IMG/VR virus record: IMGVR_UViG_3300024999_000030
Coordinates: 1-64,000 of that record
Strand: one strand, 5' to 3'
Length of the DNA: 64,000 bases
Position 1 is the stretch's first letter. The number at the start of each line of letters is the position of its first letter. A program made the translations under genes and the position numbers. Shown here one piece after another: positions 10,314-33,549 of this stretch. The notes under the pieces are model-generated. The model was not told the DNA's origin and searched no databases. It was given only the letters and a program-made list of their open reading frames with translations.

Positions 10314-10891
10314 TGTATGTAGAAATATCTCCTAGACAAACTGGTAAAACTACTAGACTTATAGCGGCTATTAAGGCTCATTTAGCAGCTCATCCGTCAA
10401 ATGAAGCTATACTGTATGCCGTTAATTATAATTATATTTATAATTCTATGCCTCTTGTGGATCAAGGCCGCATTAATCGTTTCAGTCGCTGTAGCTATGC
10501 CGGTCGCAATAAAATTAAACTATTTGTAGATGAATTCGATTACTTATTATCAATGGAAGATTTTAATGAAATTCGTTGTAGATATAATTTAAATAATTCA
10601 TATTGGAGCACAACACCAAGGTTTATAAGGAATTCAATTAAGAAAGACGATGATGTTTTATTATCTATCTTATTTCTTAATGGAGGAAAGTGGTTTAGTA
10701 TGAATAAGGCTAACGTTAGACATGTTTGGAGGAATCGTTTTTATCTTAAAACTATTTCAAAAGAAGTTATGAAAATAGAATATTTTGGTTACTGGTTTCC
10801 GCCGGGAATGCTTCCGGTGTTATCTAAAGATGTTTATAGTCCAGCCGGATTTATAGAACATTTTATTCCACCTAAATGGCTTGACTTTTGA
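10313..10891 (+). CDS. P-loop NTPase-like protein (terminase/helicase-like Walker motifs)
   Basis: SPRQTGKTT Walker A; LFVDEF Walker B-like. Confidence 0.55.
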   Translation: MYVEISPRQTGKTTRLIAAIKAHLAAHPSNEAILYAVNYNYIYNSMPLVDQGRINRFSRCSYAGRNKIKLFVDEFDYLLSMEDFNEIRCRYNLNNSYWSTTPRFIRNSIKKDDDVLLSILFLNGGKWFSMNKANVRHVWRNRFYLKTISKEVMKIEYFGYWFPPGMLPVLSKDVYSPAGFIEHFIPPKWLDF

Positions 10892-10909
10892 CTATTAATA
10901 TTTTATATT
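10881..10909 (+). promoter_or_regulatory. Promoter of tRNA operon 1
   Basis: TTGACT-N17-TATATT, with CTATTAAT inside the spacer. Confidence 0.85.
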
Positions 10910-10929
10910 ATTAATGAAAGAGAAATGAA

Positions 10930-10998
10930 ATGAATATAGTAAATAGTTCACTCCTGTTATCGTTGTCTAGTCTTCCTAGCGCCCGAGGGGTGTTCTAA
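10930..10998 (+). CDS. Attenuator leader peptide 1 (Leu/Ser-sensing) MNIVNSSLLLSLSSLPSARGVF
   Basis: 11 of codons 6-17 are Leu/Ser, using five different Leu and five different Ser codons; the 3' end is the antiterminator strand. Confidence 0.85.
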   Translation: MNIVNSSLLLSLSSLPSARGVF

Positions 10999-11023
10999 GT
11001 CTATCTCCCTTTAGACTTTTGAC

Positions 11024-11058
11024 AAGCCCCTCGGAAATCGGGGGGCTTTTGGTTTTTT
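11024..11058 (+). terminator. Attenuator terminator 1
   Basis: AAGCCCCTCGG-AAA-TCGGGGGGCTT plus U-tract; its 5' strand also pairs with CGAGGGG at 10984. Confidence 0.85.
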
Positions 11059-11060
11059 AT

Positions 11061-11147
11061 GCGGATATGGTGGAACTTGGTAGACACAGAAGTCTTAAAA
11101 ATTTCTGGCCCATGGCCGTCCCAGTTCAAATCTGGGTATCCGCACCA
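11061..11147 (+). tRNA. tRNA-Leu(TAA)
   Basis: Cloverleaf, loop CT-TAA-AA, long V-arm, encoded CCA. Confidence 0.92.
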
Positions 11148-11150
11148 AAT

Positions 11151-11237
11151 GCGGTGGTGATGTAATTGGTAGCCATGTCAGCCTTAGAAGCTGATGGAAG
11201 AAATTCCGTATCGGTTCGAGTCCGATTCACCGCACCA
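11151..11237 (+). tRNA. tRNA-Leu(TAG)
   Basis: TCAGC-CTTAGAA-GCTGA arm, long V-arm, CCA. Confidence 0.92.
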
Positions 11238-11280
11238 AAAAGGGGATACTGGACGAAGATTAAATATGGTAAATTATAAT

Positions 11281-11358
11281 GGGCCGGTGATGCAATTCGG
11301 TAGACATCAATCTCTCAAAAAGATTGTTTTAAGGTTTCGAACACCTTCCGGCCTACCA
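11281..11358 (+). tRNA. tRNA-Leu(CAA), short variable region
   Basis: CAATCT-CTCAAAA-AGATTG; only ~4 nt before T-stem; CCA. Confidence 0.85.
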
Positions 11359-11365
11359 AAATAAT

Positions 11366-11453
11366 GGAGGGTGGGGCCACTTGTCTAGTGGACACCGCCT
11401 TGAAAGCGGTTGAGACTTTAGGGTTTTCGGTTGAATTCCGACACCCTCCTCCA
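11366..11453 (+). tRNA. tRNA-Ser(TGA), 8/4 acceptor/T-stem type
   Basis: GGAGGGTG/CACCCTCC 8 bp, TCGG/CCGA 4 bp, 5 bp D-stem with 5 nt loop, U73. Confidence 0.8.
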
Positions 11454-11456
11454 AAT

Positions 11457-11544
11457 GGAAGATTGGCCGAGTGATTTAAGGCTCCGGTTTGCTAAACCGG
11501 CGAGTCGAAAGGCTCCAAAGGTTTGAATCCTTTATCTTCCGCCA
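11457..11544 (+). tRNA. tRNA-Ser(GCT), canonical 7/5
   Basis: CCGGT-TTGCTAA-ACCGG, long V-arm, G73-CCA. Confidence 0.92.
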
Positions 11545-11547
11545 AAC

Positions 11548-11635
11548 GGAGAGTGAATCGGTCGGGGACCGAACACGCTCGGAAAGCGTTGTGTATCCGC
11601 AAGGATATAGGAATCGTGCTCTTCGCTCTCCGCCA
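11548..11635 (+). tRNA. tRNA-Ser(GGA), 8/4 (or 9/3) type, C33
   Basis: GGAGAGTG(A)/(T)CGCTCTCC, long D-stem TCGGT/ACCGA, loop TC-GGA-AA, V-arm with GCAA loop. Confidence 0.78.
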
Positions 11636-11641
11636 ATTTAT

Positions 11642-11728
11642 GGGAAGTGATCTGAACCGTTGTTCAGCATCGTCTCGAAAACGAATGGGACCTTCGGGTT
11701 TAGGGTTGAACTCCTTCGCTTCCCGCCA
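11642..11728 (+). tRNA. tRNA-Ser(CGA), 8/4 (or 9/3) type
   Basis: GGGAAGTG(A)/(T)CGCTTCCC; 6 bp D-stem CTGAAC/GTTCAG with 4 nt loop; loop CT-CGA-AA. Confidence 0.8.
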
Positions 11729-11731
11729 AAC

Positions 11732-11763
11732 AAAAAAGCCCAGGTATAAATACCTGGGCTTTT
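11732..11763. terminator. Bidirectional terminator ending tRNA operon 1
   Basis: AAAAAAGCCCAGGTA-TAAA-TACCTGGGCTTTT between convergent units. Confidence 0.8.
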
Positions 11764-11782
11764 ATTAATATGTTATTGGATT

Positions 11783-12202
11783 TTATTTCTTGTTATACAA
11801 TTTCAAATTTGATCTTTTATTAAATTTACTTATTGATAAATCTGAGCCCTCAATCCATGCAAAAAACTCGGCTCTAGATAATGGTACAGCTTCTCCTGTT
11901 GCATAATTTTCTATATATATACCAGCTGGGGTATATGATCCCCGCACATATTCTTTAATAAGATTTTTTTGTGCACTAGTTATGTTTCCATCTAATCTTA
12001 TGGCCATTCCGCTACCAGGAAAAACATGTATCTCAATGGCATTCTTTCCTTTAACTCCTAAAGCCTCTTTAGTACTACGATGTTTACCATTTAAAGTTGG
12101 AACAAAAGAACCATTTTCTAAAACTATTAAATGTTGTCCTTTATATTCTTCTATATTGTTAGCTGGTTCTATTTTTAAAGCTTGAGCTATAAAAAGACGC
12201 AT
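11783..12202 (-). CDS. Hypothetical protein (only convincing minus-strand gene)
   Basis: GGGAG RBS and CTATTAAT motif on the minus strand upstream; ends at the bidirectional terminator. Confidence 0.7.
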   Translation of the reverse strand: MRLFIAQALKIEPANNIEEYKGQHLIVLENGSFVPTLNGKHRSTKEALGVKGKNAIEIHVFPGSGMAIRLDGNITSAQKNLIKEYVRGSYTPAGIYIENYATGEAVPLSRAEFFAWIEGSDLSISKFNKRSNLKLYNKK

Positions 12203-12272
12203 AGATAGTCTCCCAATCAGGCTATAATTATTAATAGCTTGACTTGAACCCTAATGAGTATTATATTATTAT

Positions 12273-12620
12273 ATGTTACATAAGTTTGAATGTTTATTAG
12301 TTAAACTTAAATTATATGATTTTTGGTGGAGCCTACAGAGGCGGTGGTGGCAAACACATGTTATCAAAAATAAGACTCTTATTCCATGTGGATCATATTG
12401 TTATTGTTATTTAGATGACTTGATTCCAAACAAATATAAGCTAATTACAAAAAAGAGGTGGAAAGCTTGTCCCTATCTTAGAAATAAAATTAATGCTCCT
12501 GATCAAAATTACGGTTATTGTATTTATTTAGATTTGGGAGATTTTGACGACACTCCTTATATTTCTTTATTGTGGGATCAATGTAAAGAATGTGGAATAA
12601 ACAATGATCTTGACTTTTAA
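12273..12620 (+). CDS. Hypothetical Cys-rich protein
   Basis: Promoter at 12239; IPCGSYCY...ACPY...YCIY...QCKECGIN. Confidence 0.65.
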   Translation: MLHKFECLLVKLKLYDFWWSLQRRWWQTHVIKNKTLIPCGSYCYCYLDDLIPNKYKLITKKRWKACPYLRNKINAPDQNYGYCIYLDLGDFDDTPYISLLWDQCKECGINNDLDF

Positions 12621-12653
12621 ATGTATTTATATTATATTTATATAGAGGGTAAT

Positions 12654-12842
12654 ATGAAGAATGCAGCAGAAACTTGGAAAAAGCTATGGAACGTTAATTA
12701 TAATATTAACTTTAAAGGTTTGAATACGTTTGGTAGAATTGTCTTTTTTCCTGTTTTTATTGCTGGTGCTTTTTGTATTGTTTTAGAATATCCTGTATTT
12801 TTATTTCAAGGGCTATGCGAAAATTGGAGAAGATTATGGTAG
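12654..12842 (+). CDS. Small membrane protein
   Basis: GAGGG RBS; one hydrophobic segment; promoter at 12610. Confidence 0.55.
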   Translation: MKNAAETWKKLWNVNYNINFKGLNTFGRIVFFPVFIAGAFCIVLEYPVFLFQGLCENWRRLW

Positions 12843-13015
12843 AAATGAAAGAAATCCCTATTTCCGAGTGGCCCGAAGAAGATCGAGAACAAGTTCTAAA
12901 TCTTTTACAGTGGTCAGCAAATAGATGTGTTCAAGCGGCCAAAGAGGCTATGGAACAATCAGATATTAAATTTACAGAAGAAGAATTAGAGGAAATGGGT
13001 AAAATAGATGTCTAA
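12836..13015 (+). CDS. Small acidic hypothetical protein
   Basis: GGAG RBS; overlaps neighbours. Confidence 0.55.
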   Translation: MVEMKEIPISEWPEEDREQVLNLLQWSANRCVQAAKEAMEQSDIKFTEEELEEMGKIDV

Positions 13016-13484
13016 GATAGGATTATTTAAAACAGCCATATATCCATTGCCCGTTATTATATCTGATAGTAAATCATCTATAGATGGGCTTTGGGCGAAG
13101 ATTAAAAATACACCAGATTACAAACGTTTAATCCAGCATCCAAATAAATATAAGTTTAATCAATTAGATATGTTGGTTAATAGAACTTTATTCTTTGCTG
13201 TGATATTAGCTGATAGTTTAATCTTATTGAGACGGGACTATGTTGAATGGAAGGCGGCTGGTAGTAAGGACCTAGACAAACAACGCCTCATGGAAATAGA
13301 TTTAAATAAGTTGAATAGCCTTTCTAAGGCTGGGGGATTATTTGGAGTTGGTATGGAAAAGCCAGAAATTTCAGATATAGCTTCAGAAGTTGCTAGTCGA
13401 ATCTCGTATTGGAAAGACTATAGATATATTCATGAATTACTATCTCAATTTTATAGAGATACTTTTGGAGGAACTATGTCTTAG
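13008..13484 (+). CDS. Hypothetical protein
   Basis: 158 aa ORF, TAG stop. Confidence 0.65.
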   Translation: MSKIGLFKTAIYPLPVIISDSKSSIDGLWAKIKNTPDYKRLIQHPNKYKFNQLDMLVNRTLFFAVILADSLILLRRDYVEWKAAGSKDLDKQRLMEIDLNKLNSLSKAGGLFGVGMEKPEISDIASEVASRISYWKDYRYIHELLSQFYRDTFGGTMS

Positions 13485-13565
13485 AATTCTTCGGTTGGTC
13501 CTCGCGCACCTCCTTATTAAATTAGTGTAAAAACATCTATCACGCTAATATAATTGGAGGACACA

Positions 13566-13985
13566 ATGGATACGTTCAAAACTGAATTTAAAAAACTTGC
13601 ACACGAAAAGAAATTAACCCGCTACGACATGGCATTATATTGTTTGTCAAAGGCGATTCTGAAAGATAATAGTTACGAAAGAGCGAGTATCTTTCTTAAT
13701 AAAAGTTTCACCCCTGTTACTAAATCCATAAAATTAAAAAATGGAGCACGTCCCTGGTTTTCATTGTGGGACGCTCTTCATTCTCTAGATAAGGCCCTCT
13801 TAACTATAAGAAAGCAATCAGAATTATTTAATTATAATTTCTCTGGTCCTTGGGCTGAAAACATCAAATTGTTAACTAGTACAATGACAGAAGATGATTT
13901 AGTTAAGATATCATCTTTATTAATTCAGTTTAAATCTACTTATGGTGAGATTAGATTCTATGAGAAAGTTGAGGTGGTATCATGA
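13566..13985 (+). CDS. Hypothetical protein
   Basis: GGAGG RBS before ATG 13566. Confidence 0.65.
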   Translation: MDTFKTEFKKLAHEKKLTRYDMALYCLSKAILKDNSYERASIFLNKSFTPVTKSIKLKNGARPWFSLWDALHSLDKALLTIRKQSELFNYNFSGPWAENIKLLTSTMTEDDLVKISSLLIQFKSTYGEIRFYEKVEVVS

Positions 13986-14189
13986 GCCTCAAATCTCTCA
14001 GAGAGGTACAGAGACTTATAGAATTGGTCATAGCACATGTCTGGTAAATCTGAAGATGAACAAGATGTCATCAGAGATAATATGGGTTTTCTCTTTCGTG
14101 ATATGACAGATGAAGAGAATAAGATTGTAGAAGAGCTATCAGCTAATCTGTATAGGCTGGAAGATGTGTTGGGAGGAAGTCATGAGTGA
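13982..14189 (+). pseudogene. Small gene, possibly frameshifted (13982 frame into 14037-14189 frame)
   Basis: RBS-led ATG 13982 stops after 21 codons; protein-like frame MSGKSEDEQDVIRDNM... runs to TGA 14189. Confidence 0.35.
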
Positions 14190-14514
14190 TACTCCTTATA
14201 CTTACATCATAGTCCGTAAAGACATCTCTCCAGAGCAACAGACAGTACAAGCTTGTCATGCTGCATTGGAGGTTGGGTTTAGATTTGAGAAACCAGAAAA
14301 AACATCTTTCTTGATTTTATTGGAGGTGGTTAATCAAGCAGAATTGTTAGCCGCTTCTTAGGAACTTGACAAAAGATGCATTGCTAGTTATATTTTCTTT
14401 GAGCCGGATAATAATATGGGGTATTCGGCTCTATGTACTAAACCTATTTATGAAAGGAAGGAAAGAAATGTCTTTAACAGATGGAAGCTCTTCACGGGAT
14501 CTAGTAAATTATGA
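14182..14514 (+). CDS. Peptidyl-tRNA hydrolase type 2 (Pth2)-like protein with in-frame TAG at 14359-14361
   Basis: YIIVRKD...Q.CHA N-half; after TAG the same frame gives ELDKRCIASYIFFEPDNNMGYSALCTKP..., completing a ~110 aa Pth2-like domain. Confidence 0.7.
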
Positions 14515-14689
14515 GATTGTGCTGCGTGGTCCCAATGGAATGTTTCAAGTGGCCGAGCAAGATAGTGCTGTGGTTTTAGTTAATGAAGAAGGTAAGGTTA
14601 TTGAGAGCAGATTGTATGACGATAGAGACTTTAGAATTATTCAAATGTTCAAAGCTGGTTTACGTCATACTGGGATCGGAAGTTTCTAA
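14468..14689 (+). CDS. Hypothetical protein
   Basis: AAGGA RBS before ATG 14468. Confidence 0.5.
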   Translation: MSLTDGSSSRDLVNYEIVLRGPNGMFQVAEQDSAVVLVNEEGKVIESRLYDDRDFRIIQMFKAGLRHTGIGSF

Positions 14690-14707
14690 ATTAAGTTATT
14701 TTTAAGG

Positions 14708-14783
14708 GTCCAGTTAGCTCAATTGGCTAGAGCAGTATTCTCTAAAAACACTGACATCCGTTCGATCCGGATACTGGACACCA
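14708..14783 (+). tRNA. Amber suppressor tRNA (CTA)
   Basis: 76 nt cloverleaf GTCCAGT/ACTGGAC; loop CT-CTA-AA; one A.C mismatch in anticodon stem; TTCGATC T-loop; CCA. Confidence 0.85.
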
Positions 14784-14797
14784 AAAGGAAATAAATT

Positions 14798-15046
14798 ATG
14801 CCATACATACCAGAATCAGATAGAGACAGATTACGTCCTCATTGTGGACCGGAAAACGTTGGTGAATTGAATTATGTTATTACATCAATTATTGATAATT
14901 ATATCGGTCCATCTATGAGATATTCAGATATTAATGCAGTAATAGGTGCTCTGGAGTGTGCTAAACTTGAATTATATCGACGTTTAGCGGCTCCATATGA
15001 AGACGAAAAAAAGGAAATAAACGGAGACGTTTATCAAAATAGATAG
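14798..15046 (+). CDS. Conserved small phage protein (DUF6899-like)
   Basis: MPYI...GELNYVIT...Y..INAVIGALECAKLELYRR..APYED.K...NGDV. Confidence 0.65.
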   Translation: MPYIPESDRDRLRPHCGPENVGELNYVITSIIDNYIGPSMRYSDINAVIGALECAKLELYRRLAAPYEDEKKEINGDVYQNR

Positions 15047-15051
15047 GAGAT

Positions 15052-15501
15052 ATGGAAATGCAGAAAAAGAAAGTTCATCGAATCCTTGCTCCCCGCCCTA
15101 AAGTTTATTTGGCGGGACCTATTAAGGATTGTACTGATGCAGAGGCAGGTGATTGGCGTAAAGAAGCTACGGAAAAACTAGCTGAAATTGGATATGACGT
15201 ATTAGATCCATTCAAGCGAGACTATCGTGGTGTCGAAGATAATCATTGGCAAGAGATTGTCGAGGGTGATAAACACGACATTGAAGCGGCAGATTATATA
15301 ATTGCTAATTGCCCAAAAGCCAGTGCAGGGACTAGTATGGAAATTTATCTATCTTGGGAAATGGGAAAGGCTCCAATTGTTATTGCTCCTAAACCTGTAA
15401 GCCCATGGGTTAGATATCATGCTGCGGACGTGGTTGATAGTTTAGATGAAGCTATTATGATGTTGAAAATTTTTGGGTCTCGAAAAATAGCAAACAAATA
15501 A
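15052..15501 (+). CDS. Nucleoside 2-deoxyribosyltransferase-like protein
   Basis: VYLAGPI...DWR...LDP...D..DI..AD.IIA.....SAGTSME. Confidence 0.8.
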   Translation: MEMQKKKVHRILAPRPKVYLAGPIKDCTDAEAGDWRKEATEKLAEIGYDVLDPFKRDYRGVEDNHWQEIVEGDKHDIEAADYIIANCPKASAGTSMEIYLSWEMGKAPIVIAPKPVSPWVRYHAADVVDSLDEAIMMLKIFGSRKIANK

Positions 15502-15567
15502 CTTGACTTTTTTATAGATCTGAGTTATATTATCAATGCACGCTAATCTTGAGGAGGATATTTAAAA

Positions 15568-16173
15568 ATGAAGAAATTTATTTGCACAATGTTGGCAGCG
15601 GCTCTTGTGGGGCTCTCGGCCTTTGCGGCTGCACCTGAACGTAAGTATGAGCTAACTTTTGGGCCTGCTTATACTTGGTCTGAATCAGCTCATATGCAGA
15701 GTTTGAATGGTCTTTCGTCCGCAACTAATATTAAGCTTTCGTTTCAAGATGATATGGGTCTTTATGTCGGGTTTTTCTTGCCTATTAGCAAGAATTTAGG
15801 ATTTTATCCTGGCCTTACGGCAAATTGGGACGGAAAGTTTTGGAGAGATGGTCAGTCTTATAATCAAATTACCTTTAAGACTTATGCTCTTGATCTAGAC
15901 GCACGATACAATTTTAATTTTAACAGTGGCACTTTTTATTTGATGGGTGGACCTACTATCACTTTCCTTCCCGAAGGGCAGCGACTTTCCGCGAATGTGG
16001 GTGTTGGTCTTAACTTTAAGTTGTTTTCATCTGACGCGTTTCGTCTTACCTTTGAGGGTAAGTATCGCGTCAACCCTAGCACTTTTTCCTACACTGATGT
16101 TAAGGGTGGGGATTATGAGTCTGCTCGTCCTGAGACTTGGACGGCTTTTACTGGCTTGACTTTTAAGTTCTAA
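15568..16173 (+). CDS. Outer-membrane beta-barrel protein with signal peptide
   Basis: MKK + hydrophobic + AFA signal; alternating beta strands; C-terminal GLTFKF. Confidence 0.8.
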   Translation: MKKFICTMLAAALVGLSAFAAAPERKYELTFGPAYTWSESAHMQSLNGLSSATNIKLSFQDDMGLYVGFFLPISKNLGFYPGLTANWDGKFWRDGQSYNQITFKTYALDLDARYNFNFNSGTFYLMGGPTITFLPEGQRLSANVGVGLNFKLFSSDAFRLTFEGKYRVNPSTFSYTDVKGGDYESARPETWTAFTGLTFKF

Positions 16174-16184
16174 GGTTGTATATT
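16156..16184 (+). promoter_or_regulatory. Promoter of tRNA operon 2
   Basis: TTGACT-N17-TATATT overlapping the OMP gene end; TATTAAT at 16181. Confidence 0.85.
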
Positions 16185-16218
16185 AATATTTATTGTAATA
16201 AATAGAAAAGAGGAGAAA

Positions 16219-16308
16219 ATGCTTTCTACTTGGTCTCACATCGAATTTGCCGAACGCCATAACGTGATGTTTAATGATATCGCGGGCGTTGGGAGCATTT
16301 GTTTGTAA
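16219..16308 (+). CDS. Attenuator leader peptide 2 MLSTWSHIEFAERHNVMFNDIAGVGSICL
   Basis: AGGAG RBS; codons 5-22 contain all of W,H,I,E,F,A,N,V,M,D, matching the downstream tRNAs. Confidence 0.88.
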   Translation: MLSTWSHIEFAERHNVMFNDIAGVGSICL

Positions 16309-16332
16309 GGCCAAATTAAAAGGCGTGCAAAC

Positions 16333-16366
16333 AAAGGCTCCCGGGAAACTGGGAGCCTTTTACTTT
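16333..16366 (+). terminator. Attenuator terminator 2
   Basis: AAAGGCTCCCGG-GAAA-CTGGGAGCCTTT plus U-tract; alternative pairing with GGGAGCATTTGTTTG at 16291. Confidence 0.88.
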
Positions 16367-16373
16367 ATGTGTG

Positions 16374-16451
16374 GTGACGGAACGCGAAGCGGACGAGCGG
16401 ACTGTCTGTGAAACAGTTGATTAGAGGTTTCGAGGACCTTCCGTCACACCA
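16374..16451 (+). tRNA. tRNA-His(GTG), A73, possible 8/4 fold
   Basis: ACTGT-CTGTGAA-ACAGT; GTGACGGA/TCCGTCAC can form 8 bp with AGGT/ACCT T-stem. Confidence 0.82.
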
Positions 16452-16456
16452 AATAT

Positions 16457-16532
16457 GCGTCTGTGGTGTAAAGCCTAAGCATGATGGACTCCAAACCCAT
16501 CGGATTCAGCTGGCAACTGAGCGGACGTGCCA
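16457..16532 (+). tRNA. tRNA-Trp(CCA)
   Basis: Loop CT-CCA-AA; atypical T-loop CTGGCAA; G73-CCA. Confidence 0.8.
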
Positions 16533-16538
16533 AAATAT

Positions 16539-16620
16539 TCAGGAGAGCGCATATGGGTTGCGACCTGGCTGTTAACCAGATGCGAAAGCACACAGAGTTC
16601 GATTCTCTGCTCCTGAGCCA
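16539..16620 (+). tRNA. tRNA-Asn(GTT) with extended variable arm
   Basis: Loop CT-GTT-AA; V-region TGC-GAAA-GCA hairpin. Confidence 0.85.
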
Positions 16621-16627
16621 AATATAT

Positions 16628-16705
16628 GCCCTGGTAGCTCAGGTGGTTTAGAGCAATCGCTTGATAAGCGATAGGTCGTAAGTTCAAGTCTTACTCGGGG
16701 CACCA
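16628..16705 (+). tRNA. tRNA-Ile(GAT)
   Basis: Canonical cloverleaf, ATCGC-TTGATAA-GCGAT. Confidence 0.93.
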
Positions 16706-16708
16706 AAT

Positions 16709-16783
16709 GCCGCTTTAGCTCAGATGTAGAGCGCTGGCCTGAAGAGCCAGGCGTCGGAGGCTCAAGATCTCCAGGCGGCACCA
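16709..16783 (+). tRNA. tRNA-Phe(GAA)
   Basis: CTGGC-CTGAAGA-GCCAG. Confidence 0.9.
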
Positions 16784-16791
16784 AAAATTGA

Positions 16792-16885
16792 TGCGGGGTA
16801 GACTAGCGGTTCAGTCACTTGGTTCATACCCAAGCCGCACGGTAGCCAATCCGTCAGGTGGGTTCGACTCCCATCCCCGCCACCA
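16792..16885 (+). tRNA. tRNA-Met(CAT), initiator-like, with ~23 nt variable arm
   Basis: 1.72 mismatch (T.C), A11-U24 pair, loop TT-CAT-AC, ACGG/CCGT hairpin in V-region. Confidence 0.78.
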
Positions 16886-16894
16886 AAAATTTAT

Positions 16895-16971
16895 ACCTTG
16901 GTCACCAAGACGGTAAGGTGTAGTCCTCATAAGACTATTATACGGCAGTTCGAGTCTGCCCCAAGGTACCA
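16895..16971 (+). tRNA. tRNA(CAT): elongator Met or Ile2
   Basis: TAGTC-CTCATAA-GACTA; identity not resolvable by eye. Confidence 0.8.
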
Positions 16972-16973
16972 CT

Positions 16974-17050
16974 GCCGTTAAAGAGGAAGGACACGACTCA
17001 CCTGCCTGTCACGCAGGGGAAAGCCAGTGGAAGTCTGGTTGGCGGCGCCA
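16974..17050 (+). tRNA. tRNA-Asp(GTC)
   Basis: CCTGC-CTGTCAC-GCAGG, G73-CCA. Confidence 0.87.
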
Positions 17051-17055
17051 CTTAT

Positions 17056-17176
17056 GGGTCTATCATCTAATAGGGCCATCCGTGATACTAGAGGTATTTA
17101 GTACATGCAAGGGCGAAAATTAAGATGCTCCCGCAGAAAGGGAGTCATGTGGGTGCAAGTCCCGACGGATCCACCA
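17056..17176 (+). ncRNA. tRNA-like RNA with ~45 nt D-loop insertion and non-canonical anticodon loop
   Basis: D-stem ATCT/AGAT encloses a long hairpin; CTCCC-GCAGAAA-GGGAG; imperfect T/acceptor stems; ends ACCA. Confidence 0.6.
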
Positions 17177-17183
17177 AGTTTAT

Positions 17184-17257
17184 GGGGTAATCGTTTAGTG
17201 CTAGGACGAACGGCTCTCTACCGTTAAACCGGAGTTGAATTCTCCGTTACCCTACCA
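17184..17257 (+). tRNA. tRNA-Glu(CTC)
   Basis: AACGG-CTCTCTA-CCGTT, CCA. Confidence 0.82.
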
Positions 17258-17259
17258 AT

Positions 17260-17338
17260 GGCGTAATCGAATAATATGGACTAATTCGCCAGGCCTTCAC
17301 CCTGGATGATACGGGTTCGATCCCCGTTTACGCTACCA
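17260..17338 (+). tRNA. tRNA-Glu(TTC), C33
   Basis: CCAGG-CCTTCAC-CCTGG; canonical T-loop; CCA. Confidence 0.75.
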
Positions 17339-17339
17339 A

Positions 17340-17368
17340 TTGACAATTCCTATTAATGGAATTATATT
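17340..17368 (+). promoter_or_regulatory. Internal promoter for Val/Ala tRNAs
   Basis: TTGACA-N17-TATATT with CTATTAAT in the spacer. Confidence 0.8.
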
Positions 17369-17387
17369 TATTTCTTAAAAGATTTAT

Positions 17388-17463
17388 GCGCCCTTGGCCT
17401 AGTGGCGAAGGCATCTGGTCTACACCCAGAATATCGGGAGTTCGAGTCTCTCAGGGCGCACCA
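17388..17463 (+). tRNA. tRNA-Val(TAC), C33
   Basis: TCTGG-TCTACAC-CCAGA. Confidence 0.85.
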
Positions 17464-17468
17464 ATTTT

Positions 17469-17542
17469 GGGCCGTGGAGTGTGACGCGAGCACGTTTCCC
17501 TTGCACGGAAATAGAGGGGTTGAACTCCCACACGGTCCACCA
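17469..17542 (+). tRNA. tRNA-Ala(TGC)
   Basis: TTTCC-CTTGCAC-GGAAA; G3.U70 present. Confidence 0.9.
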
Positions 17543-17565
17543 AAATCCTTAATCATCTGATAATT

Positions 17566-28569: not shown

Positions 28570-28722
28570 GCTCCGGCGATTGTGCTAGAGTTCGGTTACT
28601 TCTCCTATTAAGAGAGCGGTCGTGGGTTCGAGTCCCACGGGGTCCATCAAAAACAACACGGGCCCCTAGCTCAGTTGGTAGAGCGCTAAAAAATACCGTA
28701 CTCGACTGTTTCTTCGCTGGGC
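28570..28722 (+). ncRNA. YrlA-type Y RNA with tRNA-mimic module
   Basis: T-arm GTGGG-TTCGAGT-CCCAC, closed acceptor-like helix GGGGTCC/GGGCCCC, then D-arm GCTC-AGTTGGTA-GAGC; upstream of Ro60. Confidence 0.85.
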
Positions 28723-28835: not shown

Positions 28836-30221
28836 ATGAAAACTAATAAGAAAACTCATACTGTTGTTCATACCGCTGAAGGCGCCGTTGCAGCTAATAT
28901 TAACGCCAAGCAACAGCTCCGTAGGTCCGTTATGAGCTGCCTCCTTTGGGAGGATTCCTTCTATGAGGAAGGTGTGTCCATTGCTAAGCGTATTACCGAT
29001 TTAGTTAAAAAGGTTGATCCTGAAGATGTAGCTTCGCTCGCTATTGAAGCTCGTGAGGATTTCAAGCTTCGCCATGTTCCATTGCTCTTAGTTCGTGAGC
29101 TTGCTCGTGTGCATAAGGGAGATTCGCTTGTTTCTGATACTTTGGCACGAGTAATTCAGCGTCCAGATGAAATGGGTGAATTTGTAAGCCTTTATTGGAA
29201 AGAGGGAAGACAGCCTTTGTCTATGCAGGTTAGAAAGGGTATTGCTAAGGCCATGGGTAAGTTTAATGAATACTCCTTAGCTAAATATAATTCTTCTAAA
29301 TCTAATATTAAGCTTCGTGATATTCTCCGTTTGGTTCATCCTTCTCCAGTTGGTGATGAACAGACTCGTTTATGGAAGCGTATTTTAACCGATGAATTGG
29401 CTACTCCCGATACTTGGGAAGTTGCTTTGTCTGCTGGTAAGGATAAAAAGGAAACTTGGACTCGCCTTATTGATGAAAATAAGCTTGGTGGATTAGCTTT
29501 TTTACGTAATCTTCGTAACATGGAAACAGCTAAAGTAGATAAGGATATTGTACGTAGGGGCTTTGACCAAATTAATGTTTCTAGGGTTCTGCCTTTCCGT
29601 TTCCTTTCGGCTGCAAATGCTGCTCCTAAGTTTGAAGTTGAACTTGAGAAAGTAATGCTTAAGAGTTTTGAGGGTCGTGAAAAACTTCCTGGCAAGACAT
29701 TGTTTATTGTAGACGTGTCTGGAAGTATGGGCGGTTCGTTATCTCATAAGAGTGAAATGAATCGTCATGATGCAGCGGCAGCTCTTGCCATCGTTGCTCG
29801 TGAGATGTGTGAAGACCCAGTTATTTATGCTACAGCAGGAAACGATATGACTCGCATTCACAAAACTTCTATCGTTCCAGCTCGTCATGGGTTTGCCCTT
29901 AAGGATGCTATTCGTACTCAAGCTAACCAACTTGGTGGTGGAGGCATCTTTCTTAAGCAAGTTATGGACTATGTAAAGAACGCAGAGGGTGAGGCCGATA
30001 GAATTATCGTCATCACTGACGAGCAGGATTGCGACATCAAGCATAAGCCATCTACGGCTCAGCCATTCGGTAGGTATAATTATATGCTTAACGTTTCAGT
30101 AGAGAAGAACGGTATCGGCTACGGGCAGTGGACTCACATCGACGGTTTCTCTGAGGCTGTATTAGATTTCATTCTTCTTAGTGAGAAGGAAAACGAGCAG
30201 GAGATATGTCAGACTAACTAA
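28836..30221 (+). CDS. rsr: Ro60/Rsr TROVE-vWA RNA-binding protein
   Basis: L+R.VMSCLLWE..FYE, AREDFKLRHVPL, PDTWEV.LS, LRNLRNM, VDVSGSM MIDAS, ITDEQ. Confidence 0.92.
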   Translation: MKTNKKTHTVVHTAEGAVAANINAKQQLRRSVMSCLLWEDSFYEEGVSIAKRITDLVKKVDPEDVASLAIEAREDFKLRHVPLLLVRELARVHKGDSLVSDTLARVIQRPDEMGEFVSLYWKEGRQPLSMQVRKGIAKAMGKFNEYSLAKYNSSKSNIKLRDILRLVHPSPVGDEQTRLWKRILTDELATPDTWEVALSAGKDKKETWTRLIDENKLGGLAFLRNLRNMETAKVDKDIVRRGFDQINVSRVLPFRFLSAANAAPKFEVELEKVMLKSFEGREKLPGKTLFIVDVSGSMGGSLSHKSEMNRHDAAAALAIVAREMCEDPVIYATAGNDMTRIHKTSIVPARHGFALKDAIRTQANQLGGGGIFLKQVMDYVKNAEGEADRIIVITDEQDCDIKHKPSTAQPFGRYNYMLNVSVEKNGIGYGQWTHIDGFSEAVLDFILLSEKENEQEICQTN

Positions 30222-30280: not shown

Positions 30281-30374
30281 GCGGGAGTCGTCCAGCGGCC
30301 AGGACAGCGGTCTTATAAGCCGCCTCGCTCCAGATTAGAGCAAAACGGGGGTTCGAGTCCCTCCTCCCGCACCA
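30281..30374 (+). tRNA. tRNA-Ile(TAT) with ~23 nt variable arm
   Basis: GCGGT-CTTATAA-GCCGC; GCTC/GAGC hairpin in V-region; CCA. Confidence 0.82.
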
Positions 30375-30743: not shown

Positions 30744-30772
30744 TTGACTTTCTTCTATTAATATATTATATT
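30744..30772 (+). promoter_or_regulatory. Promoter of tRNA operon 3
   Basis: TTGACT-N17-TATATT with CTATTAAT in the spacer. Confidence 0.85.
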
Positions 30773-30787: not shown

Positions 30788-30883
30788 ATGAATATGTTTA
30801 CCCAAGGAACCCCTAAACCACAGACAAGAACATACCAACGCTATTGCGGTAGGTATGTGCAAAATTTGGGGGCTTTGTCCTAA
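30788..30883 (+). CDS. Attenuator leader peptide 3 MNMFTQGTPKPQTRTYQRYCGRYVQNLGALS
   Basis: GAGG RBS; codons 5-23 consist only of T,Q,G,P,K,R,Y,C, matching the downstream tRNAs. Confidence 0.9.
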   Translation: MNMFTQGTPKPQTRTYQRYCGRYVQNLGALS

Positions 30884-30907
30884 GTATCTGTATCGCGGTT
30901 CAAAGAC

Positions 30908-30934
30908 AAGCCCCCGAGAAATCGGGGGCTTTTT
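30908..30934 (+). terminator. Attenuator terminator 3
   Basis: AAGCCCCCGA-GAAA-TCGGGGGCTT plus U-tract; alternative pairing GGGGGCTTTGTC (30868) with GACAAGCCCCC. Confidence 0.88.
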
Positions 30935-30948
30935 ATTTAAAGAAAAAC

Positions 30949-31038
30949 GGGTCCGTCACCTAGTGGCCGAGGGTTCCAGCCTTTTAAGCTGGCGAGGTTT
31001 TACCTCCACCGTTGGTTCAAATCCAACCGGTCCCACCA
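30949..31038 (+). tRNA. tRNA-Lys(TTT) with long variable arm
   Basis: CCAGC-CTTTTAA-GCTGG; GAGG/CCTC V-arm. Confidence 0.85.
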
Positions 31039-31049
31039 AATATAATTTT

Positions 31050-31130
31050 GCCTCCGTAGCTCAGTCGCGTTAAGTAGCATCCGGCTCTTACCCGGAAGGT
31101 CGCAGTCATCGCAAGCTGCCGAGGGCACCA
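31050..31130 (+). tRNA. tRNA-Lys(CTT)
   Basis: TCCGG-CTCTTAC-CCGGA; atypical T-loop. Confidence 0.8.
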
Positions 31131-31137
31131 AAAAAGT

Positions 31138-31215
31138 CTGGGTGTAGCTCAGTCTGGCCAGAGCATCGCGTTTGGGACGCGAGGGTCGGGGGTCCGAATC
31201 CCTCCACCCAGACCA
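31138..31215 (+). tRNA. tRNA-Pro(TGG)
   Basis: C1-G72, A73, TCGCG-TTTGGGA-CGCGA. Confidence 0.92.
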
Positions 31216-31226
31216 AAGGAGATAAA

Positions 31227-31925
31227 ATGCCAGTGTGCGTTCTTTGTCATGCGGAGTTTCCAAATAGGCAGCGAATAGACGATAAGATTAGAAATTTAAA
31301 AAATAGGAAGCTTTGTTTAAAATGCTCTCCGTTTGGAGAACACACTCAGGCTCATAATTTATTGCCCAGAAAGAGAAATTTTACAGACGATCAGTTTATG
31401 GAGGCGGTAAAAAATAATATCACTATTAAGGCTGTGTTGTTGCAGCTTAAATTAAGCCCGAGAGGAAATAATTATAAATTAGTACATAGGCTAGTGGAAC
31501 AATTTAATTTAGACGTATCTCATTGGAGTGTGGAGTTATCAAACTCTAATACTATGAAGAAGAAGTACTTAAGTATTAAAAGGGATGCGTCAAAAATCTT
31601 ATGTTTGGGGAGCACAACCGGTCGGCGAGCGGTTAAGGCGTGTCTCTTGAGAACTGGAGTCAAAAACGAATGTGCAATGTGCCATTTATCTGTGTGGCAA
31701 GGCCAGCCACTGTCTTTGCAGCTACACCATATTAATGGTCAATGGGATGACAACAGAGAAAATAATTTGCTGTTACTATGCCCAAATTGTCACTCTTTGA
31801 CAGATACGTTTTGTGGCAAGAAGAACGAAACAATTAATAAAGCTTGTGCTTGTGGTGCTCGCATAAAAAGTAAAAGTACACAGTGTGTGAAGTGTTACAA
31901 GGGGAGTCGTAAATTAGGTAAATAA
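31227..31925 (+). CDS. HNH homing endonuclease within tRNA operon 3
   Basis: CAMC....WQGQPLSLQLHHING...DNRENNL.LLCPNCHSLT. Confidence 0.88.
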   Translation: MPVCVLCHAEFPNRQRIDDKIRNLKNRKLCLKCSPFGEHTQAHNLLPRKRNFTDDQFMEAVKNNITIKAVLLQLKLSPRGNNYKLVHRLVEQFNLDVSHWSVELSNSNTMKKKYLSIKRDASKILCLGSTTGRRAVKACLLRTGVKNECAMCHLSVWQGQPLSLQLHHINGQWDDNRENNLLLLCPNCHSLTDTFCGKKNETINKACACGARIKSKSTQCVKCYKGSRKLGK

Positions 31926-31926
31926 T

Positions 31927-32002
31927 GTCCTTATAGCTCAATGTATAGAGCGTCTGGCTACGGACCAGAAGGTTGGGGGTTAGAGTCCTCCTAGGGACAC
32001 CA
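31927..32002 (+). tRNA. tRNA-Arg(ACG)
   Basis: TCTGG-CTACGGA-CCAGA; A20. Confidence 0.9.
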
Positions 32003-32005
32003 AAT

Positions 32006-32093
32006 GGTGGGGCGGCAGCGACGGTGAGCTGCAAGTGGCTGTAACCCACTCGCCTTAATGGCTTAGGGAGTTCGAATCTCTCCCCCACCACCA
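32006..32093 (+). tRNA. tRNA-Tyr(GTA)
   Basis: AGTGG-CTGTAAC-CCACT, long V-arm. Confidence 0.9.
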
Positions 32094-32102
32094 ATAATAT
32101 AC

Positions 32103-32188
32103 TGAGGAGTGGCCCAATTGGCAGGGCACGGGGCTTTGGACCCCGCGTGGTCTCCACATTGAAGGTTCGAGTCCTTCCTCCTCAGCCA
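32103..32188 (+). tRNA. tRNA-Gln(TTG) with long variable arm
   Basis: U1-A72, CGGGG-CTTTGGA-CCCCG, GTGG/CCAC V-arm. Confidence 0.85.
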
Positions 32189-32194
32189 AAATAT

Positions 32195-32280
32195 GCAGGA
32201 GTCCCCTAGTGCTCGATGGGACCGCACTTGTAATGCGGCGGCGAAAGCCCACGTGGGTTGAAATCCCACCTCCTGCTCCA
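32195..32280 (+). tRNA. tRNA-Thr(TGT) with extended variable arm
   Basis: CCGCA-CTTGTAA-TGCGG; GGC-GAAA-GCC. Confidence 0.85.
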
Positions 32281-32288
32281 GCGCTTAT

Positions 32289-32364
32289 GGATCAGTGGCG
32301 AAGTGTTAAACGCGACCGCCTGCAGAGCGGTTTATCGGGGGTTAAAATCCCTCCTGGTCCTCCA
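32289..32364 (+). tRNA. tRNA-Cys(GCA)
   Basis: ACCGC-CTGCAGA-GCGGT, U73. Confidence 0.9.
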
Positions 32365-32374
32365 AAAAATTTGA

Positions 32375-32462
32375 TGGGGAGTCGCGTAGCGGCCTAGCGC
32401 ATCGGTCTCTGGAACCGACAGAGGAAACTCTAACGAAGGTTCGAATCCTTCCTCCCCTGCCA
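32375..32462 (+). tRNA. tRNA-Gln(CTG) with long variable arm
   Basis: TCGGT-CTCTGGA-ACCGA; AGAG-GAAA-CTCT. Confidence 0.85.
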
Positions 32463-32464
32463 AT

Positions 32465-32538
32465 GAGGATTTGGTATAGTGCTCGTGCCCTCGGTTGCCT
32501 GCCGAGAGAGGCGGGTTGGATTCCCGCAATCCTCTCCA
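32465..32538 (+). tRNA. tRNA-Gly(GCC)
   Basis: CTCGG-TTGCCTG-CCGAG, U73. Confidence 0.85.
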
Positions 32539-32551
32539 ATTGGAGAATATA

Positions 32552-33223
32552 ATGATTAAAATAAAATTCACGTGTGAATATTGTGGAGTTGAAGGCGAAA
32601 GGCGAAAATCAGATTACAATCGAGCTAAACATCATTATTGCTCTCATAAGTGCAGTGTAAAGGCTTCGGATTCTATTGTCTACACAGAATGTGCTTTTTG
32701 TAGAAAGCAATTAATATTAAAAAGAAATAAGGTTAGGGCAAAAGCTAGAGTGTTTTGTTCTCATTCTTGTGCCTCTAAAATGATAAATGTGGAGCGAGGT
32801 GGAAAACTAAGGAAGGGAGAAATTAACTGTAGCTATTGTGGAAAAAAATTGGCCGGGGAGCAATTCAAATATTGCTCTATTTCTTGCCAACACCAACATA
32901 TCTATTCAAATTTTATTAAAGCCTGGCAAGATGGAATAGTTTCTGGTTCCACGGCAAATGGAGGTGTCGCCTCGACCATTAGAAAGTATTTACATGATAA
33001 ATATGGATGTAGGTGCGCCATATGTGGATGGAATAAAATTAATCCACATACACATAAAATCCCACTGCAAGTCCATCATATTGATGGAAATTCTCATAAT
33101 GCCAGTGAAGATAATCTTATTTTGATTTGTCCGAATTGTCACAGTTTAACTGATAAATTTGGCGCCAGAAACAAGGGGAACGGTAGAGACTCAAGAAGAA
33201 TACGAAGAGCTAATCAAAAATAA
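32552..33223 (+). CDS. HNH homing endonuclease with Zn-ribbon repeats, within tRNA operon 3
   Basis: GGAG RBS; repeated CxxC...YCS..C; CAICGW...LQVHHIDGN..NA..DNL.LICPNCHSLT. Confidence 0.88.
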   Translation: MIKIKFTCEYCGVEGERRKSDYNRAKHHYCSHKCSVKASDSIVYTECAFCRKQLILKRNKVRAKARVFCSHSCASKMINVERGGKLRKGEINCSYCGKKLAGEQFKYCSISCQHQHIYSNFIKAWQDGIVSGSTANGGVASTIRKYLHDKYGCRCAICGWNKINPHTHKIPLQVHHIDGNSHNASEDNLILICPNCHSLTDKFGARNKGNGRDSRRIRRANQK

Positions 33224-33297
33224 GCTTCCATAGTGTAGCACCAACACGACAGTCTTCCAAACTGTAATCGCGGGTGGGACTCCCGCTGGAAGCTCCA
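33224..33297 (+). tRNA. tRNA-Gly(TCC)
   Basis: ACAGT-CTTCCAA-ACTGT, U73. Confidence 0.88.
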
Positions 33298-33300
33298 AAT

Positions 33301-33379
33301 GTCCTCATGGCGCAAATGTATAGCGCGAGAGTTTCTCCTAAACTCTAGGCTGGGGGTTAGAGTCCCTCTGAGGACACCA
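33301..33379 (+). tRNA. tRNA-Arg(CCT)-like with 9 nt anticodon loop
   Basis: Body resembles Arg(ACG) at 31927 (A20); AGAGT-TTCTCCTAA-ACTCT. Confidence 0.72.
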
Positions 33380-33382
33380 AAT

Positions 33383-33465
33383 GTCAGTGTAGACGAGGTG
33401 GTCTTCTAAACCACTATTCGTAATTGGATCTGAAAATGTGGGTTCAAGTCCCACCGCTGACACCA
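33383..33465 (+). tRNA. tRNA-Arg(TCT) with rearranged D-domain
   Basis: Intact acceptor, anticodon (GTGGT-CTTCTAA-ACCAC) and T arms; only 8 nt before the anticodon stem; D-loop-like AATTGGAT lies 3' of it. Confidence 0.75.
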
Positions 33466-33472
33466 AATTTTT

Positions 33473-33549
33473 GCAGGCTTCGTATAGTCGTACTAGTACG
33501 CTAGTTTCGTAAACTAGAAACGGTGGATAATAGCCGCCAGCCTGCTCCA
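33473..33549 (+). tRNA. tRNA-Thr(CGT)
   Basis: CTAGT-TTCGTAA-ACTAG; atypical T-loop ATAATAG. Confidence 0.8.

Follow-up and report, generated by a model that had tools for sequence, protein, structure and literature searches.

Predicted leader-peptide attenuators in front of three tRNA operons of an environmental phage

Amino-acid biosynthetic operons of enterobacteria, such as those preceded by trpL, hisL, leuL, thrL, ilvL/ivbL and pheL, are controlled by ribosome-mediated transcription attenuation, in which a promoter is followed by a short translated leader with regulatory codons, by a mutually exclusive antiterminator and intrinsic terminator, and by the regulated genes. The position of the ribosome decides the fold, and sensing of more than one amino acid has a precedent, since thr senses Thr and Ile and ilv senses Ile, Leu and Val. 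T-box riboswitches likewise tune the supply of translation-related genes to the charging state of a specific tRNA by choosing between a terminator and an antiterminator, however they bind the uncharged tRNA directly and have no leader ORF. The inducible long tRNA array (trn operon) of Anabaena sp. PCC 7120 is a supernumerary tRNA operon that is silent by default and is switched on when translation is impaired (PMC8421152; PMC10272220). It is controlled by a protein repressor, TrcR, at the promoter and is not amino-acid-class specific, and no mention of a leader, attenuation, uORF or stalling was found by a term search of PMC10272220. In phages such as T5, many tRNA genes are found in an early region together with repeated strong sigma-70 promoters, interspersed HNH endonuclease genes, small ORFs and stable tRNA-like RNAs, and phage tRNAs are known to replace host tRNAs attacked by defence nucleases (PMC12409363).

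Here, a stretch of 64,000 nucleotides (the window; positions 1 to 64,000 of the IMG/VR record IMGVR_UViG_3300024999_000030) of a 333-kb environmental phage was analyzed. It was confirmed that three units of the window each consisted of a sigma-70-type promoter, a Shine-Dalgarno-like site, a short ORF, a GC-rich terminator with a T-tract and, 3-9 nt later, the first tRNA of an operon. The coordinates of the leader ORFs in the original prediction were corrected. The features of the three units were as follows:

10881..10909 (+), promoter of unit 1, TTGACT-N17-TATATT
10930..10998 (+), leader ORF 1, 22 aa, MNIVNSSLLLSLSSLPSARGVF
10979..10992 (+), region 2 of unit 1, the 5' strand of the antiterminator, inside codons 17-21
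11024..11058 (+), terminator 1, stem-loop 11024-11048 (about -18 kcal/mol) plus T-tract
11061..11728 (+), tRNA operon 1: Leu taa, Leu tag, Leu caa, Ser tga (11366), Ser gct, Ser gga (11548-11635), Ser cga (11642-11728), closed by a bidirectional terminator at 11734-11763
16156..16184 (+), promoter of unit 2, TTGACT-N17-TATATT
16219..16308 (+), leader ORF 2, 29 aa, MLSTWSHIEFAERHNVMFNDIAGVGSICL
16286..16305 (+), region 2 of unit 2, a 15-16 bp antiterminator with 16320-16344
16333..16368 (+), terminator 2, 12-bp stem (stem-loop 16333-16360), GAAA loop, about -21 kcal/mol, plus T-tract
16374..17542 (+), tRNA operon 2: His, Trp (16457-16532), Asn, Ile gat, Phe, Met, Met, Asp (16974-17050), an unidentified 128-nt CCA-ending RNA (17053-17180), Glu ctc, Glu ttc, an internal leaderless promoter (17340-17368), Val, Ala (17469-17542), with a terminator at 17566-17583
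30744..30772 (+), promoter of unit 3, TTGACT-N17-TATATT
30788..30883 (+), leader ORF 3, 31 aa, MNMFTQGTPKPQTRTYQRYCGRYVQNLGALS
30863..30880 (+), region 2 of unit 3, antiterminator with 30902-30917, about -22 kcal/mol
30908..30940 (+), terminator 3, 9-10 bp stem (stem-loop 30908-30933), GAAA loop, about -20 kcal/mol, plus T-tract
30949..33549 (+), tRNA operon 3: Lys ttt, Lys ctt (31050-31130), Pro, an HNH ORF (31227-31925), Arg acg, Tyr, Gln ttg, Thr tgt, Cys, Gln ctg, Gly gcc, an HNH ORF (32552-33223), Gly tcc, an Arg-like tRNA with a 9-nt anticodon loop (33301-33379), Arg tct (33383-33465), Thr cgt

The leader ORFs started 9-28 nt downstream of the inferred transcription start, and the gap from the stop codon to the terminator stem was 24-25 nt in all three units. 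The promoter sequence was not specific to the leaders. It was found to be a general promoter of the + strand early region of the phage, since 13 + strand sites were recorded between 7276 and 33656 at up to 1 mismatch, when 0.77 were expected.

About 9 odd tRNAs were missed by ARAGORN with default settings and by Rfam. These were recovered by using relaxed ARAGORN together with folding, resulting in Leu x3 and Ser x4 for operon 1, in His, Trp, Asn, Ile, Phe, Met x2, Asp, Glu x2, Val and Ala for operon 2, and in Lys x2, Pro, Arg x3 (one with an aberrant anticodon loop), Tyr, Gln x2, Thr x2, Cys and Gly x2 for operon 3. Hence, the claim of the original prediction that the three operons serve 2+10+8 = 20 amino acids with no overlap was correct.

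Further, the composition of the leaders was compared with a background taken from the window's own ORFs. Codons 6-17 of leader 1 were Leu or Ser except for one Pro, and used 5 different Leu and 5 different Ser codons. The pure run of 10 Leu/Ser residues had a probability of about 1e-7. In leader 3, codons 5-23 were 19 consecutive residues drawn from the 8 amino acids of operon 3, all 8 of which were present, and the probability of this run was also about 1e-7. Leader 2 had 18 of 28 residues in its set, and all ten amino acids of operon 2 were found within codons 5-22 (16 of 18 in-set), with a joint P of 0.0015. The confusion matrix of leaders against tRNA sets had a diagonal of 11/18/21 and off-diagonal values of 3-7.

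The last 4-6 sense codons of each leader (region 2) were complementary to the 5' strand of the terminator (region 3), as had been proposed for the last 4-5 codons, and formed an antiterminator with it. When compared with dinucleotide shuffles, a complementarity as strong as that observed was reached in 4/1000 cases for leader 2 (z -3.7), 24/1000 for leader 3 and 73/1000 for leader 1. Folding was then performed with a ribosome mask of 29 nt, extending 15 nt 5' and 11 nt 3' of the A-site codon. The antiterminator was available when the A site was placed on any codon up to the end of the in-set run, and it was lost when the ribosome moved further or was placed at the stop codon. This was true for all 8 leader copies examined. 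However, the equilibrium fold of the full-length leaders 2 and 3 favored the terminator at every ribosome position, and therefore the model depends on co-transcriptional kinetics, as it does for trp. A trp-like 1:2 protector or pause helix appeared in the full-length MFE folds of the window, but by our reading of the alignment the variable third positions inside it, including that of the Pro codon, were not compensated in two of the related lineages (B and D, below), and the kinetic fold without a ribosome gave the antiterminator. Such a helix was not clearly supported, and an untranslated leader probably defaults to read-through.

Relatives were first found through flanking proteins rather than through the leaders themselves. 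Three further metagenomic lineages carried the leaders, here named B (contigs L022, L024, L028 and L032), C/C' (contigs L026 and L047, respectively) and D (contig L027). The promoter of unit 1 was conserved in L024 and L047. The leaders were 81-88% identical in nucleotides, when the flanking genes were 58-73% identical. At in-set codons at least 9 synonymous changes were observed, and 9 replacements stayed in the set against 2 that left it (P 0.0008 pooled, or about 0.004 by our arithmetic using the 0.38 expectation of leaders 2 and 3 only). Additionally, Pro16 of leader 1 was replaced by Leu in B and C', which moved this position into the set. In leader 2, regions 2, 3 and 4 changed together (GGGAGC/GCTCCC became CTAGGGG/CCCCTAG). 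The helix had 15 pairs with 97.8% of cells paired and 2 compensatory pairs, and at most 66% pairing was reached when it was slid, although only 3 lineages were available per leader, the counts were small, and the shuffle control reached the observed value in 38-54 of 500 shuffles.

The match between the leaders and the tRNA sets was kept in lineages B, C/C' and D. Lineage B had lost the Asp tRNA from operon 2, and its leader 2 had Asp20 changed to Asn with no Asp codon left. The match was not perfect, however. His7 was replaced by Tyr in B and C without a Tyr tRNA in that operon, and Thr5 was replaced by Ala in D. Contig L026 of lineage C lacked the Asn, Phe and Ile tRNAs and had a gutted Met tRNA, and contig L047 of C' lacked three Ser tRNAs and had a Phe/Ile hybrid, when both kept unchanged leaders.

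Based on these analyses, it was proposed that the three units are ribosome-mediated transcription attenuators that gate the three phage tRNA operons. Every part of the originally predicted mechanism that could be tested held up in silico and in related genomes, and we assign this reading a probability of roughly 0.78; translation of the leaders, transcription-translation coupling and a read-through responding to aminoacyl-tRNA levels were inferred from sequence. In the proposed sequence of events, host RNA polymerase starts at a strong sigma-70-type promoter and a ribosome loads on the leader and translates the run of codons listing the amino acids served by the downstream tRNAs. If every listed codon is decoded promptly, the ribosome is on region 2 or at the stop codon when region 3 emerges, the terminator forms and the transcript ends 3-15 nt before the first tRNA. 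If the ribosome is held at any listed codon because that aminoacyl-tRNA is scarce, or if it never loads, region 2 stays free and pairs with region 3, the terminator cannot form and the whole operon is transcribed. New charged phage tRNAs would relieve the stall, which closes a negative-feedback loop. Because the three lists are disjoint and together cover all 20 amino acids, the phage could top up only the class of tRNAs that is limiting. The purpose suggested in the original prediction, countering anticodon nucleases or starvation, remains speculation.

It was considered whether the leaders could instead be general translation-capacity sensors, so that any slowdown of ribosomes (too few ribosomes, an initiation block, antibiotics or host shut-off) would open all three operons and the amino-acid lists would be historical or only loosely relevant. 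The default formation of the antiterminator without a ribosome in the kinetic model is in line with this, out-of-set codons at positions 2-5 would also trigger read-through, and the Anabaena array is induced by general translational stress (PMC8421152, PMC10272220). Nevertheless, we regard this as unlikely, since it explains neither the three disjoint lists that equal their own operons, nor the replacements that stay inside the set, nor the joint loss of the Asp codon and the Asp tRNA in lineage B.

It is less likely still that the short terminated transcripts or the peptides are the real products, acting as a trans-acting sRNA or a micropeptide, with an incidental position in front of tRNA genes. 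Attenuator-derived products with functions of their own exist (rnTrpL and peTrpL), and the leaders were conserved more strongly than neighboring genes. However, a fixed peptide function would not tolerate Tyr, Cys or Arg at one position while keeping set membership, and the competition between the 2:3 and 3:4 helices and the 3-9 nt distance to the first tRNA indicate action in cis, although this reading does not exclude attenuation. The absence of any regulation, with ordinary terminators or processing signals and chance reading frames, is very unlikely. ORF lists are purely mechanical and promoter-like and terminator-like sites are common in this region, but a strong promoter followed 130-180 nt later by a strong terminator makes little sense unless it is regulatory, the composition match has P below 1e-10 when the three leaders are combined, SD sites are present, and the pattern of synonymous changes and the conservation of leaders above flanking genes in four lineages also argue against chance.

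In comparison with the enterobacterial attenuators, the regulated genes are tRNAs rather than enzymes and the element is found in a phage. The lists cover 2, 8 and 10 amino acids, mostly with 1-4 codons each and with varied synonymous codons, instead of tandem runs of one amino acid, and region 2 lies inside the 3' end of the ORF rather than after the stop codon. No Rfam leader family (Trp_leader, His_leader, Leu_leader, Thr_leader and others) and no T-box model matched here. At E values up to 5 only a weak rnk_pseudo match of 28 bits was recorded, against a gathering score of 55. The phage leaders are analogues and not members of the Rfam leader families. In our literature searches no such control of tRNA genes was found, and in the scanned tRNA regions of T5 and of Xanthomonas phage X1 there was no terminator directly upstream of tRNAs and no matching leader ORF.

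Some details of the original prediction were corrected. Leader 2, which had been described by its ten in-set amino acids, also contains L, S, T, S and R outside its set, with S and R inside the run, and leaders 1 and 3 start with 4 out-of-set residues. Two tRNAs, a suppressor-type CTA at 14708 and an Ile-TAT at 30281, lie outside the leader-controlled operons, and Val and Ala of operon 2 also have the leaderless promoter at 17340-17368. The two HNH ORFs interrupting operon 3, together with the clustered tRNA genes and the repeated host-type promoters, correspond to the organization of the early-region tRNA island in the T5 annotation.

The 332.7-kb viral contig IMGVR_UViG_3300024999_000030, the first 64 kb of which were analyzed, was found as identical copies in two sister samples. 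It is a tailed phage, as it encodes an HK97-fold major capsid protein at 6205-7221 and tail-fibre-like proteins. No close cultured relative was detected: a blastn search of the 10800-17700 region against 50,697 phage records resulted in generic tRNA hits only, and tblastn searches with leaders 2 and 3 and with a 1334-aa protein gave nothing. A 201-aa protein encoded just upstream of leader 2 (15568-16173) ends in a Phe-terminal motif like those of outer-membrane beta-barrel proteins, which hints at a Gram-negative host, although no Pfam hit was obtained for it.

Between about 7 and 34 kb, nearly all genes are located on the + strand behind a repeated strong promoter, TTGACT-N17-TATATT, for which 13 + strand sites were found at up to one mismatch against 0.77 expected. 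The promoter is therefore a general feature of this region and is not special to the leaders. The motif CTATTAATR, present in the spacers of the leader 1, leader 3 and Val/Ala promoters, looked like a tRNA-specific operator. However, it turned out to be a genome-wide motif occurring 17 times in the window against 2.4 expected, mostly in intergenic regions (sites include 10892, 17350, 30755, 2292, 5437, 28044, 37151, 53163 and 58541), and it may be a phage-specific promoter or operator.

Default ARAGORN detected 26 tRNAs and Rfam detected 22-24, whereas about nine tRNAs escaped both default ARAGORN and the Rfam tRNA model. Many of the tRNAs are odd, having long variable arms or unusual D arms. 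Many tRNAs for Met, Ile, Lys, Gln, Thr and Asn (16792-16885, 30281-30374, 30949-31038, 32103-32462 and others) are 82-94 nt long with long variable arms, a feature normally limited to Leu, Ser and Tyr tRNAs in bacteria. The remaining tRNAs were recovered by relaxed ARAGORN combined with folding, and three operons were thus delineated:

11061-11728, operon 1: Leu taa, tag, caa and Ser tga, gct, gga, cga.
16374-17542, operon 2: His, Trp, Asn, Ile gat, Phe, Met, Met, Asp, an unidentified 128-nt CCA-ending RNA, Glu ctc, Glu ttc, then an internal promoter (17340) followed by Val and Ala.
30949-33549, operon 3: Lys ttt, Lys ctt, Pro, Arg acg, Tyr, Gln ttg, Thr tgt, Cys, Gln ctg, Gly gcc, Gly tcc, an Arg-like tRNA with an aberrant loop, Arg tct and Thr cgt.

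The amino-acid sets of the three operons are disjoint and sum to 20. Two tRNAs lie outside these operons, namely a suppressor type with anticodon CTA (14708-14783), located inside an ordinary operon with no leader, and Ile tat at 30281. The latter is preceded by a YrlA-like (Y RNA-like) element at 28592-28708 (41 bits, below the gathering score of 69), a Ro60/TROVE ORF at 28836-30221 and a strong terminator, the 94-nt tRNA-Ile(tat) starting 8 nt later. The 128-nt RNA of operon 2 (17053-17180), located between the Asp and Glu tRNAs, has a tRNA-like acceptor and T arm and no Rfam match, and it resembles the tRNA-like stable RNAs annotated in T5. Operon 3 is interrupted by two HNH-type endonuclease ORFs (31227-31925 and 32552-33223). 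The Arg-like tRNA at 33301-33379 is a paralogue of Arg-acg, in which a 2-nt insertion gives either a 9-nt loop or a UCC reading.

Each operon is preceded by the promoter, an SD-like site, a short ORF, a 24-25 nt spacer and a GC-rich hairpin with a T-tract, followed by the first tRNA. The leader ORFs were as follows:

10930-10998, leader 1: MNIVNSSLLLSLSSLPSARGVF
16219-16308, leader 2: MLSTWSHIEFAERHNVMFNDIAGVGSICL
30788-30883, leader 3: MNMFTQGTPKPQTRTYQRYCGRYVQNLGALS

The match between the leaders and their operons was tested against random peptides drawn from the protein composition of the window, in which the three sets make up 0.158, 0.468 and 0.374 of residues, respectively. A pure run of 10 Leu/Ser in leader 1 and a pure run of 19 in-set residues in leader 3 each had a P of about 1e-7, while 18 of 28 in-set residues together with the presence of all ten set members in leader 2 had a P of 0.0015. 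The leader-by-set count matrix was 11/7/3, 5/18/5 and 3/6/21. Leader 1 uses five different Leu codons and five different Ser codons, and leader 3 uses AGA, CGC and AGG for Arg as well as both Gln and both Tyr codons, which looks like sampling of isoacceptors rather than ordinary codon bias.

The last sense codons of each ORF (region 2) are complementary to the 5' strand of the terminator (region 3), forming duplexes of about -16, -25 and -22 kcal/mol for leaders 1, 2 and 3, respectively. These values were reached by dinucleotide shuffles in 73, 4 and 24 of 1000 trials. At equilibrium with the full terminator present, only leader 1 switched, whereas leaders 2 and 3 always preferred the terminator, so that ribosome positions were not discriminated. 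This is also true of classical attenuators, which work kinetically. Therefore, the transcript was folded as it exists before the 3' strand of the terminator (region 4) is made, with a 29-nt ribosome footprint masked at each codon in turn. The 5' strand of the terminator was sequestered by region 2 whenever the A site was on codons 1-14 (leader 1), 1-20 (leader 2) or 1-23 (leader 3), and it was released once the ribosome moved further or sat at the stop. In every case the change-over coincided with the end of the in-set run.

In the absence of any ribosome the antiterminator formed. A trp-like 1:2 helix appeared in the MFE folds of the window, although by our reading of the alignment it is not maintained in relatives. 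It was therefore proposed that termination likely requires complete, timely translation of the list, which is an AND gate over the listed aminoacyl-tRNAs.

Further, searches with flanking proteins, which do not depend on the leaders, revealed three lineages in addition to that of the window (lineage A). Lineage B was represented by JGI 3300036715/3300037010/3300035180 and Logan SRR11727740 (loci L022, L024, L028 and L032), lineage C/C' by ENA ERZ27293393 and ERZ27293349 (loci L026, L047 and L049), and lineage D by JGI 3300005259 (locus L027). The neighbouring 192-aa, 201-aa and 100-aa proteins returned only the same phage or distant loci without tRNAs from IMG/VR, and a separate search with the 192-aa protein found only itself. 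Searches of viral, metagenome and genome collections with DNA patterns of the leaders found only lineages A and B, as did an alignment-based search. The locus L041, encoding a 61% homologue of the protein upstream of leader 2, has no leader or tRNAs after it.

All three additional lineages keep the promoter-leader-terminator-tRNA units with the same amino-acid sets. The leaders are 81-88% identical in nucleotides, while the flanking genes are 58-73% identical. In leader 1 the Leu/Ser run is invariant as protein across A, B and C' and carries five synonymous differences, and Pro16 becomes Leu in B and C'. In leaders 2 and 3 the replacements at in-set positions are Ala/Val, Asn/His, Asp/Asn, Gln/Lys, Tyr/Cys and Tyr/Cys/Arg. 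Nine events stay in the set and two leave it (His7 to Tyr in B and C; Thr5 to Ala in D). The probability of at least 9 of 11 staying was 0.0008 with the pooled neighbour expectation of 0.31, and about 0.004 by our arithmetic when the 0.38 expectation of leaders 2 and 3 was used. Leader 2 of lineage C/C' ends in TAG instead of TAA (L026 3003-3005; L047).

Regions 2, 3 and 4 of leader 2 change together between A and B/C. The antiterminator of leader 2 has 15 pairs with 97.8% of cells paired and two compensatory pairs, and pairing fell to 66% or less when the partner strand was slid. Pair counting was run only for this helix. The MAFFT alignments of the terminators and of leader 3 in lineage B were shifted by indels, so those helices were judged by folding each copy separately.

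Lineage B has lost the Asp and Glu-ctc tRNAs from operon 2, and its leader has Asp20 to Asn, leaving no Asp codon. However, counter-examples to such a correspondence also exist. Contig C lacks the Asn, Phe and Ile tRNAs and has a gutted Met tRNA, and C' lacks three Ser tRNAs and has a Phe/Ile hybrid, when both keep unchanged leaders. C' shows that the larger deletion in C is a variant and not the normal state of the lineage.

Other parts of the tRNA region also differ between the lineages. The 128-nt RNA of operon 2 is absent from B and C. In B, C and C' the internal promoter of operon 2 is followed by a structured RNA of about 220 nt before the Val tRNA, with two copies in B (L028 975-1350; L026 3670-3900; L047 10430-10570), which matched no Rfam family and is absent from the window. 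Lineage B has the empty sites of the two HNH-type ORFs. The homologues of the Arg-like tRNA in B (L022 5209-5284) and D (L027 2533-2608) have a normal 7-nt loop with anticodon CCT. The homologue of the Thr(tgt) tRNA in L049 (246-331) carries anticodon TAT, which may be a change of decoding identity.

Based on these analyses, the original prediction that leader-peptide attenuators sense the amino acids of their own tRNA operons and together cover all 20 was supported as far as sequence analysis can go, with the underlying sequence features confirmed and the regulation itself inferred, while the suggested role against anticodon nucleases or starvation is only plausible. Mechanistically, the arrangement belongs to the trp/his/leu/thr class of ribosome-mediated attenuation, the structural criteria being fulfilled apart from the 1:2 helix, for which the evidence was mixed. 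It is not a homologue of any Rfam leader family and it is not a T-box, and no other known cis-regulator was matched in Rfam. It differs from the classical cases in that the regulated genes are tRNAs, the lists cover 2, 8 and 10 amino acids, region 2 lies inside the ORF, and the carrier is a phage. The nearest functional analogue is the stress-inducible tRNA array of Anabaena, which is controlled by a protein repressor (PMC10272220). A scan for terminator-proximal tRNAs with small upstream ORFs, which recovered units 1 and 3 in the window as a positive control, found nothing in T5 or Xanthomonas phage X1, the only two phages tried.

It is possible, with a probability of roughly 0.6, that the virus carries a complete, self-regulating tRNA supply, in which three leader peptides together interrogate decoding of all 20 amino acids, each switching on only the tRNA operon that serves the amino acids on its own list and being switched off again by charged product tRNAs. 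No earlier case of leader-peptide attenuation acting on tRNA genes, nor of a single attenuator that senses 8-10 different amino acids, was found in the literature, although most subscription journals were not covered and this absence is not proof. Such a system would also give phages an inducible answer to loss of host tRNAs, whether from host-genome shut-off or from tRNA-cleaving defence systems.

Usually, tRNA genes are treated as constitutively or growth-rate controlled, and phage tRNAs as passive codon-usage or counter-defence cargo. A leader-peptide attenuator in front of tRNA operons would show that tRNA supply itself can be feedback-controlled by decoding speed, that attenuators can be built as multi-amino-acid AND gates in which termination needs every listed aminoacyl-tRNA, and that a phage can monitor the whole decoding capacity of the host in three channels. 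The question of when and why phages deploy their own tRNAs against host shut-off or tRNA-targeting immunity is thereby made directly testable, and the three leaders would be compact natural reporters of aminoacyl-tRNA availability for defined sets of amino acids.

Upstream of leader 1, a KamA-family radical SAM enzyme (8583-9716), similar to lysine 2,3-aminomutase and more weakly to EpmB, is conserved in B and C'. A 2526-aa ORF directly after operon 2 (17663-25243) has no Pfam match, and glycosyltransferase genes occupy this position in lineage B. The order of Ro60, terminator and Ile(tat) tRNA is kept in lineage B (L022 1818-3386). Additionally, the phage encodes a full-length RNase Y homologue (TIGR03319, 449.6 bits) next to an AAA ATPase (35598-37157 and 33933-35585), and this pair is conserved in B, D and L049.
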